Shown: piece after piece, positions 2,075 to 62,115 of the stretch
Layout: each line of letters starts with the position of its first letter
Numbering within the stretch: position 1 is the stretch's first letter
DNA from: Camelus dromedarius
Taxonomy: Eukaryota
Assembly: GCF_036321535.1 (NCBI RefSeq)
Contig: NC_087454.1
Coordinates: 27,156,001-27,220,000 of the forward strand
Length of the DNA stretch: 64,000 bases
Reading direction: 5' to 3'
The notes under the pieces: model-generated
What the model saw: the letters and a program-made list of their open reading frames with translations, nothing else
Database searches by the model: none
What the model was told of the DNA's origin: nothing
Position numbers and translations under genes: made by a program

Positions 2075-2271
2075 CTGTCAAGGTTTGGAGCTGGTAACCG
2101 GAGTCATGGCCACAGTCCAGCCTGCTGGTCTGCAGCCACCGCCTCCGTTTCTGCCCATGCCAGGCTGCAGCCCAGAGGGCGCTGGCTGCTAGAAGCTTGC
2201 TGAGAAAGATGCAGGCCAGGAGAAAAAGGATGGAAGTGGGTGGGAAGGGGGTCTCCTCGTCTGAAAGGCTC
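2075..2271 (-). CDS. TREM2: TREM2 exon 4 (transmembrane with Lys186, cytoplasmic tail), 197 nt
   Basis: [65 protein letters not shown]; acceptor ctccaag|, donor G|gtgagc. Confidence 0.96.
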
Positions 2272-2972: not shown

Positions 2973-3063
2973 CTGGAGATGCTATGCTCCACCTGGGTAC
3001 CCTCGAAGTTCTCAGACTCCTCGGGGATCCAGAGATCTCCAGGGTCCTGGTAATCAAGGGGGT
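2973..3063 (-). CDS. TREM2: TREM2 exon 3 (stalk, includes EH/SISR shedding site), 91 nt
   Basis: [31 protein letters not shown]; acceptor cccgcag|, donor AG|gtatag. Confidence 0.96.
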
Positions 3064-4438: not shown

Positions 4439-4789
4439 CAGCCAGCACCTCCACCAGGACCTTCCTGAGGGTGTCAGCCTCGCTACCGTGGAGGCTCTGG
4501 CACTGGTAGAGGCCAGCATCATGGGCTTGAAGATTCCGCAGTGTAATGGTGAGTGTGCCACCCAGGGCATCATCCGTGATGGCCGTGCTCCCATTCCACC
4601 TCTTCAGGAAGGACAGCAGCCATGAGGGGTGGGTACTGACCACCTGCTGGCACAGACCCTCTTCACCCAGCTGGCGGCACCAGGCTTTGCGTCTCCCCCA
4701 GTGCTTCAAGGAGTTGTAGGGACAGAAGACACGCAGGGACCGGCCTGCCATGCCCTGGAATACTGTGGTGTTTTGGGCTCGGGACAGTT
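4439..4789 (-). CDS. TREM2: TREM2 exon 2 (Ig V-set domain), 351 nt
   Basis: Translates [13 protein letters not shown]...[17 protein letters not shown]...[27 protein letters not shown]; acceptor ccccag| and donor G|gtgagt. Confidence 0.98.
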
Positions 4790-6293
4790 CTGGGGAGAAG
4801 ACATTCATTCACTTACCAAATGTTAATTGAACACCTACCATTTGCAATGAACCAAAAAGACAGAAATTCTGCCCTTAAGGGACTCAGGTTCCTACACAAG
4901 TTGGGAGAAGGTGGCACAGCCAAGGTATGTGTTTACTGGAAACTGTAAACCAGGAAACCTGGGTCCTGGGTCTGGCTTTATCACCACTGGACTTGCTGGA
5001 CATCTTTGGAGAAGTAACTGACCTTCTCTGGGCCTATTTCCAGAGACACTTGGTCTTGAAGTTCCCTCTAGTTCTAGTCCACACTTCTCCCTGTCACATG
5101 GGACCAAGCCCTCTCCTCTTCCCCTCCATCTCAAGAGAGTAAGGCCAGTGGCCCTCTCAGGTCTGGGGCAAGTTCCACGGGGGGCTGGGTGCCCCTCCCT
5201 GCCCCCACCACGTTTGCTTCCCCTGCAGCTGCCCACGCTGGTGCCAGCCCCACATTCTCTTTCTGACCTTAAGCTTCCAGCTTCTCTGTTTCTGTGGCTT
5301 TGTTCCCCTTTCAGGAGGGACTCGTCTCAGAGCTATTTTGGAGGAGACATGAGATTGCTATTTTAGGGACCCTCCTTGGGGTTGGGGAGATGGGCTTAGA
5401 ACACCAGTCTACTGCCAGGGCAGGGGCTGCAGGAGACTCATCTGGAGCCCTCTGCCTCCACCTCCCCTCTCTTCCACCACATCTTCAAGCACATGGCGAC
5501 AGAAACGTGTAGGACAGGATTGGGGAGCTGGTAGCCTACCTTTTGGAAACAGAGAGACCTAGCAAGTGGTGCCCCCTGCTTACCACCCCATCCAGCCCTC
5601 TGCCGCTGGGCAGGCCCACACACCGCCACCCCCGTGCCCCGCTCCACCTCCAGCTAAGAAGCTCTAGCTCTGTTCGGAAAGTCTTTCCTCTCACCCAGGT
5701 GTGCCAGTTGTTCTGGGGGAGCAAGGGCCACCCTTCCCCCAGTGAGACAAGGCCCTTATGTACAAAAATGTGGGGTGTCAATCCCCACCCGTTCAATCAC
5801 AGAACCTTCAGCCCCTTCACCTCCCATCCAGGGCTGAGGACGAGAGGACCTTCAGAGCATGGGAGGGGCACCCCAAAGATGCAGATTCCCAGTACTGGCT
5901 CTTTTCTCCCTCCCACCTTGTCACTCCTCTGGGGCTAGTTTTATGTTTAGTGGTTCATAATTTTAGGGGCTCTTACCTGTGCCTCTCAAAACTTCCCCCA
6001 ACTACTAGCTAGTGCCTGAGATGCCACCATCAGAACTCCTTCCCTTTCCAGGTGGCTGAGTCCACCAGCCTCTGGTACCTTCACACGTGTGAAGAGTCTG
6101 ACAGTGGGTTCTGATACCAGGCAGGGAGGGAGAGCCTGGGGAATAAGGGGCACCGTGGGAGGAGAGGGGTGCAGAACGTGCCGAGGGTTTCAGCCGCCTT
6201 CTGTGTGGCTCAGCGCTCCCCACCCACCCACCCACCCTGCCCTACACTCAAGGAAGGGGAAGGAACGAAGTCAGCAGAAGGAGGGAATCCTAC

Positions 6294-6333
6294 CTGTGAC
6301 AGAGAGCAGGATGAGCAGCAGGAGAGCCTCCAT
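6294..6333 (-). CDS. TREM2: TREM2 exon 1 (signal peptide MEALLLLILLSVT), 40 nt coding
   Basis: ATG at 6333 on minus; hydrophobic leader; donor ACAG|gtagga at 6293; phase 1 joins exon 2 in frame. Confidence 0.95.
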
Positions 6334-6889
6334 GTCACCCTGCCCTTGTGAAGGACAGCCAGCCACAGAGTGCTTGGCGCAAGATCTTTCCCTTAAACTA
6401 CAGAAAGGGTCGGGCTTGTCAGGCGCTGCTCACAAGAACTGGCTCCTGGGGGTTGAGCAATCATCAGGACTGGGATCTGGCTTTATGATTCAGTGAGGGG
6501 AGTGGGGTCAGGGAGGAGCGGAGGGGAGGAGCCACCACTGCAGCCTAGCAGCACGATGCTGAGGATCCTAGACTGCCGAGAGGACAGCCCGCTGTCCTGC
6601 CCACACCAGCCAGGGTGACCTCACACGGCTGGGGCTGGTCAGAGCCCAGACCAGGGATCACTGCCCTCACTGCCATGTTCAGACCCTTCTCCACTTGTAG
6701 CGCCTGCCATTCTCTGGTTCCAGCCTTGCAAGGGATGGAGAACAGCTGCTCCTCTTGAAGGCCAGGACCCTCACCCAGGCCCTTCTAGCCCTTCCCTCCA
6801 GGTCAGCAACCCTGTAGTGGCAGCAGTGAAGATCATGGCCCTTGGCTTCAGGTCTCTCCGTCCTCACCGCCTGTGTGTGCAACCACTGC

Positions 6890-7060
6890 AAACACTGTCC
6901 ATAATCTTTCTGTGTCTCAGTTCCCGTATCTGTAAAACAGGAATAATAATAATAGTGTAGAGAGTAATTGGGAGGATAACGTGGATTTCTACAGGCAAAG
7001 TTCTTTAGACCAGGACCTGACATATAGTAAGCACTCAACAAAATTAACTAGTACTGTTAC
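6890..7060. mobile_element. MIR SINE
   Basis: tctgtgtctcagttcccgtatctgtaaaacaggaataataata core. Confidence 0.6.
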
Positions 7061-7619
7061 CCTGGTTATCATGGGAGAGGGAAAATTGGCCATCCAGGAG
7101 AGGGAGAACTTTCTCTCCAATTTGCTGCCCACGTTGAGACTCCTTTGCACAGTCGGGCACCTGTGTGCACATGCTCACACAGGCATTATCCTTGGCGCAC
7201 GCACACCTTGAACCCCTGACCATCCTATGAGCAAGACAGGACATGACATTTCCTGGAGTTCTAGGGCTGGGGTGTGTTTCCTCCACACGTGCAGATCCTG
7301 TGAAGGGTGATCCTGGCGCAGGGGCCTGGATGTAACGAGGCACAGAGGTGTGAAACGGCCAGGTGAGCCGCGGATGGGGGCAGGGAGGCGAAGCAACTCC
7401 CTTGGGCAGGAAATGGAGTTGCGCTGGGGGAAGCAGCAGGAGAGGCTGGAGGGGTCCATAGGTGCCTACAGATAATCAAAGTCTACTTTGGTTTCCTGAA
7501 AGCACTCATTGATTTGTTCTTTTATTCATTTATTTACCCATATTTACTGTGTATCTACCAAATGGACAAGGAATCTGGCTAGAGATGGGGAGTTAATGGT
7601 GAACGTAAAATAGCCCTTC

Positions 7620-8640
7620 ACTAAGAGAGCCAACAGCCCACATTTCTATCAGCCCCAAAAAGTTCCCTGGCGTCCCTTTTAGCCAATCCCTTCCTCTGTA
7701 ATCCTGGTCCTGGTAACTACTGATCTGACTTCAGTGCCTATAGCTTCCTGCCCTTTCTAGAATTACATGGAATCATACAGTATGTACCCTATGAGTCTGG
7801 CTTCTTTCACTTATCATATAATTCATGTAGCATGCATGAAGTTGTGCTTCTCAGTAATTCATCCCTTTTTAATTGCTGAATAGTATTTCATTGAATGGCT
7901 GAACCACAGGTAGTTTATTCACCAGCTGATGAACATTTGAGTTGTTTCAAGTTTGGGGAAACTATGAATAAAGCCACTAGAAGGATTCGTGTACATCTAT
8001 TTTGTGTGGACATATATTTTCACTTCCCTCAGATAAAATCTGAGCAGTGGAAGTGCTAGGTCATGTGATAAGTATATGTTCAACTTTATAAAAGCTGCCT
8101 GCCCCACAGTTTTGCAATGTGGCTGGAACATTTTTGCATCCCTGTCAAGACTTGATGTTGTCAAGTTTCTTTTTAAACCATTTCAATAGGTTTACAGTAA
8201 TATCTTACGATTTCGAGTTGTATTTTCCTAATGACGAGTGATGTGGAATATCTTTCATTATTTATTTGCCATTTGTACATCTTACTTGGTGAAGCATTAG
8301 TTCAAATCTCTTGTCCATTTTTCATTGTTTATTATTATTAAGTTGTGAGAATTCTTTATATACTCCAAATACAATTCCTTCATCAGACATGTGATTTACA
8401 AATATTTTTCCAGTTTGTAGCTTGTTTTTAAATCATTTCCTTAAATGTCTTCAAAGGGTAGATGATTTTAATGTTGATAAAGTCTAAATTATTGAGTTTT
8501 CATTTATGATTTGTGCTTTTTGTATTCTACTAAGAAAAATGTGCCTGTATCAAAGTCACAATGATTTTCTCCTATGTTTTCTGTTAGAAGGTTTATAGTT
8601 TTGGTCTATAAGCCATTTCAAGTTAATTTTTACATGTGGT
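7620..8640 (-). mobile_element. Old L1 (L1M-type) 3' fragment
   Basis: T-rich sequence with recognisable inverted L1 3' motifs; boundaries approximate. Confidence 0.7.
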
Positions 8641-9132
8641 ATGCTTCTCAGCAACTCCCCGCCCCTTCCCACCTGGGCCTCATGTCTGCCTCACTATCTG
8701 GCTGACTCCTATCTATCCACCTTTCTTGACACCCCCCGACTCGGTTACCTGTGACCCATCTCCAGCATAGCCCTCTGAGAGAAGGTTAGGGGTCAGGGTC
8801 AGGGGTAGGATGCCTGGGAACGGACCCATAAGCCAGTCTTGCTCAAGCCTGAAGAAGCCCCTGTGATCATTACAGATCTATGGAGGAGTCCTGTTGGTAG
8901 CAACAAAAATGTTCAGAGAAATGTGTGTGACAGGGAAGGAAGAACCCCCTGAAAGCCTGCTGGCCTGAATTCCGGTGCTGGTTCACCCCTAACCAGCCAG
9001 TGACCTTGGGGAAGGGCCCCAGTTTTCAGCTATGAGAGGGTTGAAGGAGGTAATTTTTAGTGTTCATTCCAGCTCTGACATCTTGTGATTCAGGATGTCT
9101 GAGAAACACACAAAAGAAGGAAAGAAACTCAC

Positions 9133-9455
9133 CCTGAGATATACCAGACGGATGGTCTGAGACCAGAGATCCTGGAAGACTCCTCGATTCCACACCAAGT
9201 CCTTTGCTCTGAGTTTAGCCACGATGAAGGGGCCTGAGTTGAGGTCATCCTGGCTGGAGATTAGAGGCTCCCAGGGCTTGTTGGGCTTGTCCAGAGCCTG
9301 GGATGTTGACTAATATAATTCAACCGTGTGCTGATTGTTTCCCTGCACTGGGTTTTCATCTTGAAGCCGTGCCAGGGGGGGCGGGTACCAGCATCTCACG
9401 GAGATTGTCTTGTCCTCCAGTTTACATAGCAGCTCTGGCTTCTATTCTCAGGAGC
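9133..9455 (-). pseudogene. psiA exon 2: degenerate Ig V-set exon of an unannotated TREM-like paralogue
   Basis: Acceptor ttctcag|GC TCC TGA GAA TAG (stops at 9450-9448 and 9444-9442); remnants ISVRCWYPP, KMKTQC, QDDLNSGPFIV, KLRAKD across frameshifts; donor |gtgagt at 9132. Confidence 0.8.
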
Positions 9456-9704
9456 CTGAGAATAAACCCTCAGGTCAGGGAGCCTCCCAGCTGCCAATGC
9501 AGGGCTGTGAGATGGGAGCCTCCCCGCTCAGGGAGCCACCGTCTTCATGTCTACACTCAGAATGCACCCCAGAGCCAGCCTCTGGCCATAGCACCACCCT
9601 GTCCCCTACCGTCCCCACCCCATAGCCCCTTTCACACCTACCTCACCTAGTCGTCTCCCCCTCCTCTTTCCCCATTCTCTCTGTCCTTCTCCCCTGCCCC
9701 TCAC

Positions 9705-9762
9705 CTGAGGCCAGAAGCACCAGCAGGACAGGTGGCAGCAGGTCTGTGGCCTCCCAGGCCAT
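9705..9762 (-). pseudogene. psiA exon 1: intact TREM/NCR2-family signal-peptide exon MAWEATDLLPPVLLVLLAS-G|
   Basis: ATG GCC TGG GAG GCC ACA GAC CTG CTG CCA CCT GTC CTG CTG GTG CTT CTG GCC TCA G|gtgagg; 58 nt, phase 1; begins MAW like the NCR2/TREML4 leaders. Confidence 0.85.
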
Positions 9763-9971
9763 GGATCCTCATCTTGAGCTGGGGTTGGGGGAGGGAAACC
9801 CCTGAGGAAAGAGAGTCCGAGCGGCGAGGATTCAGCCCCACCACCAAAGCCTGCCTCGGAAAGCTCTGGGAACTCTGGCGCTCTCATGCCCAGTTTCTTT
9901 CCCGTCAGCCTGTCTCCCTCCCACAGGGGTCGGAAGAGCTATGAAAGCCCAGGAGGAAATGATGGTGAAAC

Positions 9972-10426
9972 TGCAATAGGGAAGAACTAATCTGACTCCA
10001 TGTTGGATCTGTTTCTTTTCCTTTAACCTGTGTATTCTATTGCTTTTGCTACAAATTAAGAATGCTGCCTATAGCCTGAAATGTACAGGACAGCCTATTC
10101 TCAAGGCTCTGACCTTTAAAGATACAACATTTTCCCATTCATACAGAGATAAAAAGTTGCAGAACAGAGAATAACATTTGCCTTGTTGGAGGTTTGCAGG
10201 AACATTGTGACCTGACCTGACCTGACCTGACAGCTGCAAGAACAAAGGATTCTGACAAGAAGAAGTTTGCAACAACCAACCACACCCCTTGTTCTTTGGG
10301 ACACTAGTCTACCGTCTTGTCCACCTGCTGGCTTTCTGAAGAAAGTTGCTATCACTTGCCCCAACAACTCATCTCTATTTACAGGCCTCTCATGCAGGGA
10401 GCAGTAGGAGCTTGGACTCCATAACA
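9972..10426 (+). mobile_element. ERV1-type LTR remnant (right boundary approximate)
   Basis: Begins TGCAATAGGGAAGAAC-AATCTGACTCCAT, resembling recalled mammalian ERV1 LTR starts; contains a (TGACC)n array. Family not assigned. Confidence 0.55.
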
Positions 10427-14295: not shown

Positions 14296-14390
14296 TTAAG
14301 TGTCTTCAGACCAAGCAGCCTTCCACGGAGGCTCCAGACTTGTAGATGGGTCCCTCCAGGGTCTGGCAGGATCATGGCACATGCTGTAGC
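14296..14390 (-). CDS. TREML2: TREML2 exon 5 coding part (cytoplasmic tail), 95 nt
   Basis: SYSMCHDPARPWRDPSTSLEPPWKAAWSEDT*; acceptor cttgcag|; total CDS 978 nt = 325 aa + stop. Confidence 0.9.
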
Positions 14391-14692
14391 CTGCAAGGTT
14401 GGGGAGAGAGATAAAGAGGGCGAGGTCCTCCTGCTCACCACCCTATGCTCCTGAGCCAGCCCATCACCTTCGGCCTTCTGCCCTCCGCTTCCTGCCAGGT
14501 CAGCCCCAGAGGGTTATGCTGTGCTGTCCCTACCTGCCCACCCTCCTCCTTTGCCTGGGTGCCACACAGCCCTCCTGACTGGACGGGGGAGGACACACCA
14601 CCTGGGGATCAAGGGCAGTCAGGCACTTTGGAAAAGGTGTCAGATCCCCAGCGCTCTGTCCTTGGAATGCCAGGAGGGTGGGCTTTACTCAC

Positions 14693-14799
14693 TTCCCATG
14701 TGTCTCTTCTTCCAGAGCCCATAGACCACGATCAGCATCACAGGCACTGGGAGCAAGGCCAGCACCCCAACAAACACAATGAGATAAGAATCCTGGTGC
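14693..14799 (-). CDS. TREML2: TREML2 exon 4 (transmembrane), 107 nt
   Basis: HQDSYLIVFVGVLALLPVPVMLIVVYGLWKKRHMG; acceptor ccccag|, donor A|gtgagt. Confidence 0.95.
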
Positions 14800-15870
14800 C
14801 TGGGGAGAATGGACAGAGCAAGGAGGAGGTGAGCATCAGGGCGCCCCACCCTGGCCCACGTCTTTCTGCATGCCCCACAAGAAGAGTGGGACCAGGGGAA
14901 ACCTGCCAGCCTCGGTGGAGAGTGATGGCCTCTCTTCTTCAGGGCCCCAGCTGTGGGTGAAAGAAGTGAGGTGCTTAGAGGTCAGAAGACGAAGCACTTC
15001 CAACCCCAGCAGAGAGACCCATCTCTCCACTTTAGTACTTCTCCTCTATTATTCCCCCAAATCTGCCGAGGACAAGGATTCTAAGAGACCCCCATTTGTG
15101 ACGGAAGAGACCAAGATTCTTCCTCTCCTCACAGTGACTGACCTTTGTCCTCACCTTTGTCCTCTGTAACAGATGATGTGGGTGCCTGCCTGTGTCCCCT
15201 AGCTGTATCACTTCCACATACGACGGTCCTCAGCACCTCCATTAAAAAAATTTTTTGGCCTGAGGACTTTCTCTTGTCACTTGCTCCCTCTATGCCGCAC
15301 AGGGCAGGCAGCCCTCTACTAGTAACCAACAGGAGTGGTGTGTAAATACCCCAGCTCCCACCCCAGCCTCCAGGTGGCTGCTTGACACTGGACCCCAAAG
15401 TTTCCCCAGCGGGACTGAGCTCTTGCTCCTCACGGTGGTGGCAGCTTGAGTAAGGAGTCTGTCTGCTGCCTCCCCTGTCTCACTTCCCCACACTCTTTTC
15501 AGTGTCCCAAATATGACGTGAATCCTCATTTCAGAGTCTGCATCTGGGGGAACCCAAATCCAAGTGCCCCCCATTTCCCACTTCCTACACCCTGAGCTGG
15601 TCCCCTTGTCCATCCCTACCCTCTCCTCCTCATCCACAGACTTTTATGCTGACCCATCCCCTGCCCTCATTTCCTGCTGCCATCCTTTCTGTCACGCGTC
15701 CATCCCAGCATCCAGTTTCCCATTCAGCAACAGGCCAGACTGAGTTTCTGGGGGGGCGACAGGGGCTGCTCTGCTATAACATTTGCACCTTGAGGTCTGT
15801 TTAGTCCCAGGGACTGTTGCCATGTCTGGTAAAATGGCATTCGACCCAGGCCCCCCTCACCCCGGGGTAC

Positions 15871-16273
15871 CTGCTAGGGGATAATTGGTTGAGGAGAGAT
15901 CTGCTGGTGGTAGGCGATCTGGTGCACAGGTGACCAGCCTTGGTCGGGGTGGAAGCTGGGCCAGCAGAGGAGGCTCTGGCATTGCTGGGAAATGCAGTCA
16001 CTGTCTGGGGCCCCATGGTCCTCCTGGACCCTTCAGTGGAGGGGCTGGCGTCAGTGAAGCTGTAACCTGCCACGGAGGTCAGTCTGATGGTCCCTGGGGC
16101 CGGAGAGGGCAAGGGTCTGGCCAAGGTGAGGAGCCCAGGTGCGAAGAGCGTCGGACTGGTGGTGAAAGGGGCCGCAGGGCCCACAGCAGGGGCAGGGCCT
16201 GTTGTAACGACAATCCCACTCTTCAGGATGCTGGCCACCTCCGGAAGAGGAGTGTCTCTCTTGGTTGTGGATG
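15871..16273 (-). CDS. TREML2: TREML2 exon 3 (Ser/Thr/Pro-rich stalk), 403 nt
   Basis: ASTTKRDTPLPEVASILKSGIVVTTG...RRTMGPQTVTAFPSNAR...SRSLLNQLSPSR; acceptor ccctcag|; donor AG|gtaccc gives the phase exon 4 needs. Confidence 0.93.
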
Positions 16274-17651
16274 CTGAGGGATCAGAGAGGGAGGAATGTA
16301 AGACTGAGTAGATCCTGGCCACCCACACACTTGTCGGGGTGCTTGGGTGGGGCCAGTCCCCGTCTCCCATCCTTGACCTTGGGCCTAGGATTCTACTCTG
16401 CTGGGGAACCAGGTGTGTGTTTGTTCAGAGGGTGAGGTTCAGGGAGGAGGAAGTAGGCACAGGAAAGAAAGAAGAGTCTTTCACAAATTTTCTAGTGTCC
16501 CCTATCAGGCAACCTGGGCCCAGAGGACACTCCCCTCCTTACGCCTATCTCTCTCATCTCCTCCTGGACTCTGCTCTTTCCTGTAAGTCAGAGATTGCTC
16601 TGCTTTGATGTTGAACACAAACTTTCCCAGTTGCTCCATGATTGGCAACTGGGATCCAGAGATGAGGACAAGGAAGCATCCAGGGCCAGATTCCAAAGAA
16701 CACCACCAGCAGCGGGGTCAGATGTCTTCCCTGGGGGCTTATTAAGAGACACTCAGACCGGTCCTGCCACCCTCATCCATCAATTCAGGGCTGTACCATC
16801 CCGTTTTCTAGAGGAAGGCTGGTGTTTGAATGGTGGAAGAGGCTGTGAGGTCTCAGTCTAGGGGGCAACGCTGAGTCTCCCTCACCAAGGAACAGGAAAA
16901 CGGAGAGAGATGGAAGGGGAGGGAGGGCTGCTGCTGCATCCCACTGCTGTGCACGCCAAGGATGTGCTCCTGAGGGCCCGCGATGAAGGAGGGGGTTGGA
17001 CAGCAGCAGTCCCCGACTTCCCCACTTCAGGTGCCTGGGGCCATAAAGCCTGGTCTTCAAGGGGGAGTAGAAGAGCATATATTGCTGGAAAACTTGAGTT
17101 TTTAATCAGGCTGAGGGCTTCTCTGATCCCCAGTATTTTAGTAGCTCCCCCCACCCCTGAGTTACTTTCTAGTTCATCACATTGTTTTATCTTCTTAAGA
17201 ACATCTGCTGTTATCTGAGGTTGTTTGTCTGATGATGTGCTATTGCCTGTCATGTCCCGTAGGGCAGGAACGTGTCTGGTTTTGCTCCCCACTGTATCCT
17301 CAGAGCCTAGAAGAGTGCCTGGCACAGAATCAGGGCTCAGTGAATATATATTGAACAGATGGCTGAATAACACAAAGCACAGAGCATCCTGAGTTCAAAT
17401 CTTACCCCGGCCACTGACTAGCTCTGTGACCCTGGACAAGGTCAGAGCTGCAGAGGACTTTTTGGAGCTCATTTCCTTCATCTGGAAGATGGTGACAAGA
17501 ATGCCCATGAAAGTGTCCGTTAAAGAACTGAAAACCCCACTATATGTCATGCCCATTGATGGATGATTATTCTTATCACATTTGATGTCGGTGGAGTGCA
17601 GGGTGGGGAAGACATGCTACAGCATCCCAGTGCCCCAGGGGACCTGCTCAC

Positions 17652-17972
17652 CTGGAGACACTTCCAGCAGGAAGCCCATCAGAGGGTAGAGGATGCCGGA
17701 GCTGTTGCGCATGCACCAGTACCGGCCTGAGTCCTGGCGCCTCAGGGCCGCCATGGTGATGTTGACCACCTTGGCCTGGGTATCGTCCTGCAGCAAGTAG
17801 CGTGGCCCCTGCACCCAGACACGGGTGAACCCAGTCTCACACTTCCTCCTCCTGATTTTGCACCAAACCTTGCCCTCTACGTGGTTTTTGCGGTTCTTGT
17901 AGGAGCACTGCACGGACAGAGTCTCCCCTTCAAAGTGCTGCACTTTGGAGTACACACTCCCAACAGGGTCAC
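17652..17972 (-). CDS. TREML2: TREML2 exon 2 (Ig V-set), 321 nt
   Basis: VYSKVQHFEGETLSVQCSYKNRKNHVEGKVWCKIRRRKCETGF...QDSGRYWCMRNSSGILYPLMGFLLEVSP; canonical splice sites. Confidence 0.97.
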
Positions 17973-39894: not shown

Positions 39895-40251
39895 TCTTGG
39901 TCACCACCAGGCGGATAGGGTGGAACAACGTGATGGAGTTCTCGGAATTTAGGTAGATCACACATCGATACAGTCCTGAGTCCTCCACTCGAAGGTCGGT
40001 CATTCGGACATGCAGTATGCCCTCAGAGGGGATGTCTTTTAGGAAGTAACGCCCATTCTGGACTTCACTGAATTCCCCCGAGACCCTCTGTGTGAGTGCC
40101 AGCGTCTGGACCTCCCCTTTATCTTTCACCCTTTGCCAGGCCTTCCGGCTGTTGGAATATGTGTGCAAGGTGACAGGACAGCTCACTTCCAGGGTCTGGC
40201 CCTCTGCCAGGATAAACTCTTCCTCGTCTGGTACAGTTGCAGCTTGGATTT
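39895..40251 (-). CDS. TREM1: TREM1 exon 2 (Ig V-set), 357 nt
   Basis: EIQAATVPDEEEFILAEGQTLEVSCP...RKAWQ...LHVRMTDLRVEDSGLYRCVIY...FHPIRLVVTK; canonical splice sites. Confidence 0.97.
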
Positions 40252-57974: not shown

Positions 57975-58308
57975 CTGGGGACACCAGCAGGTGGATTTTC
58001 TTGTACAGAATGGTGCCACCTTTGGAATTCTTGGCTGCACGCCAATAGTTTCCTGAATCCACCTCTTTGAGTTCTGCCATGGAGATATTTGTGAACCCAG
58101 AGTCAGATCGTGTACAGAGAGTCCTGGGCCAATGTCCTGGGCTTGGAAATGGAGACTAAGCACTTATACTTTGATGATTTCCTCCTACACCAGATTTTGG
58201 CTTTATATGAATTTCCTTCTTTGTTTGAGTACCTGCAGCTCTCGGAGAGCATCTGCCCCACCTTCCTGTGCCAAAGCTCCTCCATCTTTTGTCTTTGTAT
58301 CCAGGAAC
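57975..58308 (-). pseudogene. psiC exon 2: broken TREM/TREML4-like Ig V-set exon, 334 nt
   Basis: GSWIQRQKMEELWHRKVGQMLSESCRY...AKIWCRR...YTI* (TGA 58105-58103), then a new frame SGFTNISMAELKEVDSGNYWR...IHLLVSP|gtgag; second Ig Cys is Arg. Confidence 0.88.
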
Positions 58309-58470
58309 CTGCAGAAGTCCTCAGGTCAGGCTGAGCGTTGGGACATGCCCTCACTCTAAACCTGACCCCACGTGGCCCTCCAGCCCTAGCGCCACACCTG
58401 CTCACCTGATTTCCCCACTCTGGTCACACCTGTCCTTCCCTCCCTGTGCCCCTCCAACCTGTTCCCTCAC

Positions 58471-58569
58471 CTGAGGCCAGCAGAACCAGCAGGACCAACA
58501 GCAGGACCAGCAGCAGGACCAGCAGGACCAGCAGCAGGACCAGCAGCAGTGTGAGGCTTCCAGAGACAT
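58471..58569 (-). pseudogene. psiC exon 1: frameshifted leader with tandem-repeat-expanded Leu/Val tract, 99 nt
   Basis: ATG TCT CTG GAA GCC TCA CAC ... ends CTGCTGGCCTCAG|gtgagg like psiA; phase 0, so the ATG frame is out of register with the (LLV)n-LLASG signal frame. Confidence 0.8.
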
Positions 58570-61630: not shown

Positions 61631-61773
61631 GTGAGGAGGGAGGGAGGGATGAGCACAGGGAGGGGAGGGTGTGACTCAGGGTCAGAGGGGGCGCCGAGCA
61701 AGTGGCTCTGTGGCCAGGGTGCTGGGGGTCAAGCCCACCCTGGCATGGCCCTGACTGGCAGCCTCTTCTCCAG

Positions 61774-62115
61774 GCTCGTGGGCACTCCCAGGGGCTCAGC
61801 ACCTCCAAAGCGTGGCAGGGCAGACCCTCTCCGTGAGGTGCCAGTACCCGCCCAAGAGCTGGCCCTACGAGAAGAAAGGCTGGTGTAAGGAGGTGTCTCC
61901 ACTCAAGTGCATGAGGCTGGTCACTAGCTCCAGTCCCCACACACTGGTTCAGGCCTCTCGGTTCTCAATCTGGGACAACCCGGATGAAGGCTTCTTCATC
62001 GTCACCATGACTGGTCTGAGGGAGGAAGACTCGGGACACTACTGGTGTCGAAACTACCACGCTTCCAGCCACTCTGTCTCCAAGTCCTTAAAGTTCTATC
62101 TGGCTGTGTCTCCAG
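61774..62115 (+). CDS. NCR2: NCR2 exon 2 (Ig V-set), 342 nt, open; later exons not found in the window
   Basis: LQSVAGQTLSVRCQYPPKSWPYEKKGWCKEVSPLKCMRLVTSS...REEDSGHYWCRNY...KFYLAVSP; four Ig cysteines; acceptor tctccag|, donor |gtgagc. Confidence 0.95.

Follow-up and report, generated by a model that had tools for sequence, protein, structure and literature searches.

A truncated TREML4-like pseudogene with a well-preserved leader exon lies upstream of TREM2 in camelids

The locus described here lies in a 64,000-nt stretch of the dromedary genome (Camelus dromedarius, contig NC_087454.1, positions 27,156,001 to 27,220,000), which we call the window and whose own numbering is used throughout. 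In this window the gene TREM2 is preceded, in the same orientation, by a two-exon stump of a TREM-like gene, here named psiA, and further upstream by TREML2 (Table 1). The initial annotation of the window had proposed that exon 1 of psiA, a short leader exon, has been co-opted as an alternative first exon of TREM2. In this work, we report the identity of psiA, the camelid deletion that placed it next to TREM2 and the conservation of its leader against rhino, all of which are new here.

Exon 1 of psiA is 58 nt long. It opens with an ATG at 9762-9760 on the minus strand, and its product is MAWEATDLLPPVLLVLLAS plus one base. The donor that follows (CAG/GTGAGG, GT at 9704-9703) matches the consensus at 8 of 9 positions; for the donor of TREM2 exon 1 (CAG/GTAGGA) the figure is 7 of 9. 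The initial annotation had described just such an exon, with an ATG, a 19-codon leader, a G/gtgagg donor and a phase 1 end, and it had placed it 3.4 kb upstream of TREM2 exon 1 in the same orientation; each of these points holds, the measured distance from the leader ATG to the TREM2 ATG being 3.43 kb. Two of its caveats were equally accurate, as the base at position -3 of the leader ATG is T and an out-of-frame ATG sits 10 nt upstream (9772-9770). Judged from its distribution among species, this upstream ATG is a camelid gain, and it stands in a good context. The exon is 100% identical in alpaca and in Camelus ferus/bactrianus. Approximately 50 nt upstream of the leader ATG, a TTTCCTCAGGGG element is conserved in camel and rhino, and it may correspond to an ETS/PU.1-type core on the opposite strand.

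The second exon of psiA encoded an immunoglobulin (Ig) domain and is ruined, as had been annotated. Its length of 323 nt is not divisible by three, in-frame stops begin at the third codon, and frameshifting indels of -11, -1, -1 and +22 separate it from the rhino orthologue. The stops and frameshifting indels are common to dromedary, Bactrian/ferus camel and alpaca. Alpaca has the same arrangement and all of the lesions, with the exception of a Camelus-specific one-base insertion near 9335 (AAACAATC versus AAAC-ATC); since alpaca and rhino are without it, this insertion is a lesion acquired after the split in an exon that was already dead. At both ends, exon 2 has kept the splice sites that work in rhino, with no difference in acceptor or donor. 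Transcription from the stump would thus normally yield an RNA that retains this exon, in which the reading frame of the leader would close after 21 codons.

To place psiA among living genes, we compared it with rhino sequence. Camel positions 16978-8679 are collinear with the white-rhino sequence downstream of TREML2 (contig L013), and the psiA part is 76% identical. The rhino counterpart has its leader exon at L013 21980-22037, and its Ig-V exon is intact, canonical cysteines and tryptophan included (VRCPY..KIWCR..DSGTYWCG); the white-rhino gene spans L013 21980 to beyond 28120. A protein search with the rhino exon yielded 17 homologues (P0167-P0183), most of about 300 amino acids (aa), from rhinos, canids, mustelids, cats and bats, annotated as 'trem-like transcript 4 protein' or 'CMRF35-like molecule 5'; none of the 17 matches was a cetartiodactyl protein. 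The orthologues have a single Ig domain, and their tails bear the tyrosine motifs ICYASL, SIYVNT and VEYASI. Because psiA is collinear with the TREML2 flank of rhino, lines up with working rhino exons and has named homologues in three orders, it is, on this comparative evidence, the dead camelid orthologue of a TREML4-like gene that is intact between TREML2 and TREM2 elsewhere. The receptor of rhinos, carnivores and bats and psiA share the same site, with TREML2 upstream and TREM2 downstream, the same structure and phases of exons 1 and 2, and the same leader MAWEAT.LLPPVLLVLLAS, in which 14 of 19 residues are kept in at least 80% of orthologues. Unlike the receptor gene, psiA carries stops and frameshifts in its Ig exon and is without exons for the stalk, the transmembrane segment and the tyrosine-motif tail.

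The loss of these later exons can be traced to a deletion. Rhino homology downstream of TREML2 stops at camel position 8679, 450 bp past the Ig exon, while the camel sequence from 8640 to the TREM2 ATG has its counterpart in the immediate 5' flank of TREM2 in black rhino and a canid. In white rhino, exons 3-5 (stalk, transmembrane and first tail exons) lie at 23.9-27.8 kb of L013, 2-6 kb beyond the Ig exon. Residues 126-300 of the homologues P0168 and P0169 gave no tblastn match anywhere in the window, and the 10 kb upstream of TREM2 in rhino and dog likewise showed no later TREML4-like exons. The distance from ATG to ATG is more than 16.1 kb in rhino versus 3.43 kb in camel; therefore, at least 12.7 kb is missing in camelids. 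Two other Camelus assemblies match the dromedary region at 99.4-99.6% identity. Within 10 kb upstream of TREM2 in cattle and a beaked whale, only the proximal TREM2 promoter (6611-6294) aligns, and no trace of psiA, its Ig exon included, was found there. Syntenic orthology to an intact gene, lesions shared across the lineage and loss of essential exons, by which a unitary pseudogene is recognised, are all found in psiA.

Table 1 Coordinates of psiA, TREM2 and neighbouring features in the window.
Feature	Position	Strand	Remarks
psiA exon 1, leader exon of the dead TREML4-like gene	9705-9762	-	ATG, 19 open codons, phase 1
psiA donor GT and G-run-rich intron start	9685-9704	-	19/20 identical to rhino; conserved along with the exon
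Out-of-frame upstream ATG, A at -3	9770-9772	-	present in dromedary, L001, L002 and alpaca; absent in rhino
psiA exon 2, decayed Ig-V exon	9133-9455	-	323 nt; stops from codon 3; frameshifts; acceptor and donor intact
Camelid deletion junction, psiA exons 3 onward removed	8640-8679	.	homology switch
Old TREM2 upstream region including ancient repeat	6620-8640	.	common to rhino and dog; neutral yardstick
TREM2 canonical exon 1	6294-6463	-	5' untranslated region to at least 6463; ATG at 6333; donor after 6294
TREM2 exon 2 (Ig-V)	4439-4789	-	acceptor phase 1 (G/AA)
TREM2 exon 3	2973-3063	-	
TREM2 exon 4	2075-2271	-	
TREM2 exon 5	1992 to stop at 1976	-	
TREML2 3' part, next gene upstream	14296-17955	-	stop near 14296
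TREML2 stalk exon	inside 15804-16370	-	
TREML2 Ig exon	inside 17617-17955	-	

The native TREM2 protein assembled from the exons in the window is 231 aa long and identical to dromedary XP_010975616 (P0129). The coding part of its exon 1 occupies 6333-6294, and three camel Logan RNA contigs (L003-L005) follow 6463-6294 collinearly before continuing into exon 2, so that 3/3 carry the canonical exon 1 with a contiguous 5' untranslated region (5'UTR). In four camelid assemblies (L001, L002, L006, L008), the longest TREM2 product is likewise the 231-aa protein from the canonical ATG. Among the readable TREM2 isoforms, the four camelid annotations and the three RNA contigs, none of the transcripts or proteins, whether annotated or assembled, begins with the psiA leader, and no 237-aa TREM2 was present among the 15 of 39 cluster members listed. 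In addition, an exact Logan look-up gave no contigs matching the two open reading frames over psiA (minus strand, 93 aa; plus strand, 115 aa).

Other TREM2 forms are on record. An exon-4-skipped TREM2 (194 aa, P0001; join 2973^1992) is annotated in camelids and is the counterpart of the human soluble isoform. Longer TREM2 models of 248-306 aa from other species were considered and set aside as 5'UTR read-ins or 3' read-throughs, with the MAWEA leader in none of them. A 1039-aa yak entry (P0132) is an annotation artefact, a run-on model of TREM1, TREML2 and TREM2, and the dromedary KAB models P0136 (TREM2) and P0164 (TREML2) are artefacts that read through introns.

We consider that psiA is probably a truncated unitary pseudogene and not a productive source of TREM2 protein, a reading that starts from the anatomy, the orthology, the deletion and the use of canonical exon 1, all of which we regard as established. 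In the camelid ancestor, the deletion of at least 12.7 kb took psiA exons 3 onward, and the leader and the decayed Ig exon stayed behind as a co-oriented stump, 3.4 kb upstream of TREM2. On this reading, TREM2 would be made from its own promoter and exon 1, and the join 9705^4789 would be possible on paper with no productive route to protein. If the stump promoter fires, the transcript would take in the dead Ig exon, carry the upstream out-of-frame ATG and close the leader frame after those 21 codons, which would make it at most a non-coding 5' variant. The death of psiA appears to be old, because camel and alpaca share its stops and frameshifts and because 13 of the 48 conserved Ig residues are changed and 5 deleted. 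The preservation of the leader may then be due to chance, to a later death than estimated or to a residual non-coding role.

Several observations weigh against this reading, and most of them concern the leader itself. Between camel and rhino, the leader differs at only 2 of 58 positions and the first 20 bases of intron 1 at 1 of 20, versus 51 of 215 in the remaining intron 1 (164/215 identical), 4 of 14 in the bases just 5' of the leader ATG and 71 of 306, with 8 gap events in addition, in the Ig exon. The initial annotation had suggested comparing the two exons in this way, and the contrast proved large: for the leader against the Ig exon or intron 1, the Fisher p is approximately 0.0002, the flanks and the dead Ig exon being about 76% identical. 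Among windows of 58, 80 or 100 nt in the 5.6 kb from TREML2 to the deletion junction, the leader is the best conserved at each size, and its conservation begins sharply at the ATG, which would fit coding use. When changes were polarised with 12 working orthologues and residues kept in at least 80% of them were counted, 0 of 14 conserved leader residues were changed in camel, against the Ig exon with its 18 altered or lost of 48 (p 0.006; substitutions only, p 0.025). A three-taxon estimate over 1851 ungapped columns of shared old sequence put the neutral camel branch at 0.134 substitutions per site, which predicts 7.75 changes in 58 nt if the leader was always neutral. At most 2 changes are seen (P 0.017 if neutral for 100% of the camel branch). 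The decay of the Ig exon fits neutrality over most or all of that branch.

Two further observations on the same side concern transcripts and open chromatin. The window positions 9300-10200, which span the psiA promoter, leader and intron, are covered to 66-74% by ten small contig sets (X5-X14) of 38-87 million letters each from three studies, which may be RNA, assay for transposase-accessible chromatin (ATAC) or capture data; over the small sets generally, the coverage is 66-92%. Since this is too much for random low-coverage DNA, it suggests transcription or an open state at this site in some tissue. The same-study contig set X45 contains almost none of TREM2 exon 2. The other observation comes from alpaca, in which TREM2 isoform X3 (P0134; XP_072801146.1, XP_072801147.1) is 205 aa long and begins at Met27 inside exon 2. 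It has no signal peptide, and two transcript accessions encode it. Such a call is what an annotator would give if the 5' exons supply no in-frame start; read from its protein start, X3 is a lead which indicates that non-canonical 5' exons join TREM2 exon 2 in alpaca.

How far the leader argues for selection depends on assumptions about its history. The probability of 2 or fewer changes rises to 0.07 if 75% of the branch was neutral and to 0.26 if 50% was. The tests range from p 0.006 to 0.07 with the test and the date of death, and there is a selection bias in that the intact look of the exon is what drew attention to it. The exon is without CpG. Within camelids there is no signal of constraint on the leader, as camel and alpaca are identical over the exon at a neutral divergence of only 2.9%; the 127-nt perfect camel-alpaca run around it ranks 7th of 243 such runs. 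The initial annotation had warned that 58 nt may stay intact by chance, and this stands within camelids but not against rhino, where the preservation goes suggestively beyond chance. It had also named disruption of the exon in close relatives at the neutral rate as an outcome that would speak against its proposal, and the exon turned out to be undisrupted, being identical in alpaca and matching rhino at 56 of 58 positions, a divergence far under the neutral rate, so that the proposal survives on this point. That the preservation reflects constraint is thus suggestive from these alignments, though unproven.

If there is constraint, it may act on something other than a protein. The stump could be an active myeloid promoter with a first exon, or an enhancer, whose transcripts run from psiA exon 1 through exon 2 to TREM2 exon 2 and would be annotated, like alpaca X3, with a product of 205 aa that starts at Met27, or which acts at the DNA level on the expression of TREM2 or TREML2. 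We hold this to be unlikely, yet it draws on much of the evidence above: the Met27 start of X3 with its two transcript accessions, the intact splice sites of psiA exon 2, the contig sets that cover most of 9300-10200 and the conserved TTTCCTCAGGGG element with its putative ETS/PU.1-type core. The start of psiA exon 2 and intron 2 also show above-average conservation, at 83-90%. However, the edge of conservation lies at the ATG and not at a promoter or 5'UTR, and the sequence just upstream of the leader is only about 65% identical to rhino, with large gaps. The support from X3 comes from its protein start and not from its 5' exon sequences, and the contig sets may be RNA, ATAC or capture alike.

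A further reading builds on the proposal of the initial annotation. In it, the deletion brought an inhibitory TREML4-like gene's promoter and signal-peptide exon into fusion with TREM2, and purifying selection has kept the leader for tens of millions of years as a differently regulated, in-frame first exon, a course of events that we judge improbable. The dead Ig exon and TREM2 exon 1 would both be skipped, and a 237-aa precursor would be made. On paper the splice works as had been claimed: joining 9705 to 4789 keeps the frame, forms the junction codon GAA as in the native splice and, when reassembled, gives a 237-aa TREM2, and the phase, the donor and the open frame are all confirmed. The leader has a hydrophobic core like that of the working orthologue, and a small-residue cleavage site follows residue 24. 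Because the predicted cleavage falls after ELSRA, within TREM2 exon 2, the mature protein from the 237-aa precursor would equal native TREM2. Moreover, conservation with a sharp edge at the ATG resembles coding constraint, and, since the later exons of psiA are deleted, TREM2 exon 2 is the only in-frame partner left for the leader in camelids.

Against this, the 237-aa product is absent from the four camelid annotations, and the three camel RNA contigs are all canonical. The out-of-frame ATG with A at -3 is fixed in camelids just ahead of a leader ATG that has T at -3. As the splice sites of psiA exon 2 are the same as those that work in rhino, skipping of that exon would not be the default. 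The significance of the leader conservation hinges on the date of death, as the figures for 75% and 50% neutrality illustrate, and the exon was picked for its intact appearance. Given the selection bias, the upstream ATG that camelids gained and the uncertainty over when psiA died, we leave co-option of the leader unproven, and even as one of several possible outcomes it strikes us as doubtful.

Gene conversion can be dismissed as the cause of the preservation, as the sole similar leader in the window, that of psiC near 58.5 kb, reaches only 82% over 56 nt, too low a match for a sequence donated recently. psiC is a second TREM-like stump (57980-58569, minus strand) with an expanded CTG/GTC leucine run in its leader, followed by an Ig-like exon; the 82% likeness to the psiA leader lies in the 3' half of the psiC leader and its donor. 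Elsewhere in the window, Ig-V exons at 61755-62048 (plus strand) and 39896-40204 (minus strand) match the TREML4-like query (tblastn E 1e-15 and 6e-9, respectively), and one of them probably belongs to NCR2 or a TREM-like gene, judging by these matches.

The arrangement can be set beside known cases. Promoters and first exons can be captured by deletion or repeat insertion, for example as alternative first exons driven by long terminal repeats. With such captures the psiA-TREM2 pair has in common a co-oriented upstream donor exon and a phase-compatible acceptor at exon 2; unlike in the typical case, the donor would be the coding leader of a pseudogene, and the chimeric join is known here on paper only. 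The human TREM cluster contains the pseudogenes TREML3P and TREML5P, which, like psiA, are dead TREM-like paralogues left in the cluster. However, they lie elsewhere in it, whereas psiA marks the loss, in one lineage, of a gene still working in other orders, and it is psiA that was truncated by a deletion abutting TREM2. TREM2 itself is known for varied transcripts, including soluble forms made by exon-4 skipping and, in long-read data from mouse (PMC11297290), novel upstream exons that are rare. The exon-4-skipped form occurs in camelids as well, and rare upstream exons joined to Trem2 are recorded in mouse, but none of the described isoforms swaps its signal-peptide exon for that of a neighbouring pseudogene. 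Our literature search found no paper that describes this camelid pseudogene or a first exon given to TREM2 by a pseudogene.

TREM2 is a much-studied receptor of myeloid cells and microglia, and the control of its expression interests many fields. If the stump did work as a second promoter and leader, camelids would be a natural experiment in which TREM2 came under the control region of an inhibitory neighbour through a dated deletion. On the ordinary reading that we prefer, the analysis identifies an unannotated pseudogene, shows it to be what is left of a receptor gene still working in rhinos, carnivores and bats, and ties the loss of this gene in camelids to a deletion of at least 12.7 kb. 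The preservation of its leader would then be a small puzzle, and a cleanly testable one.

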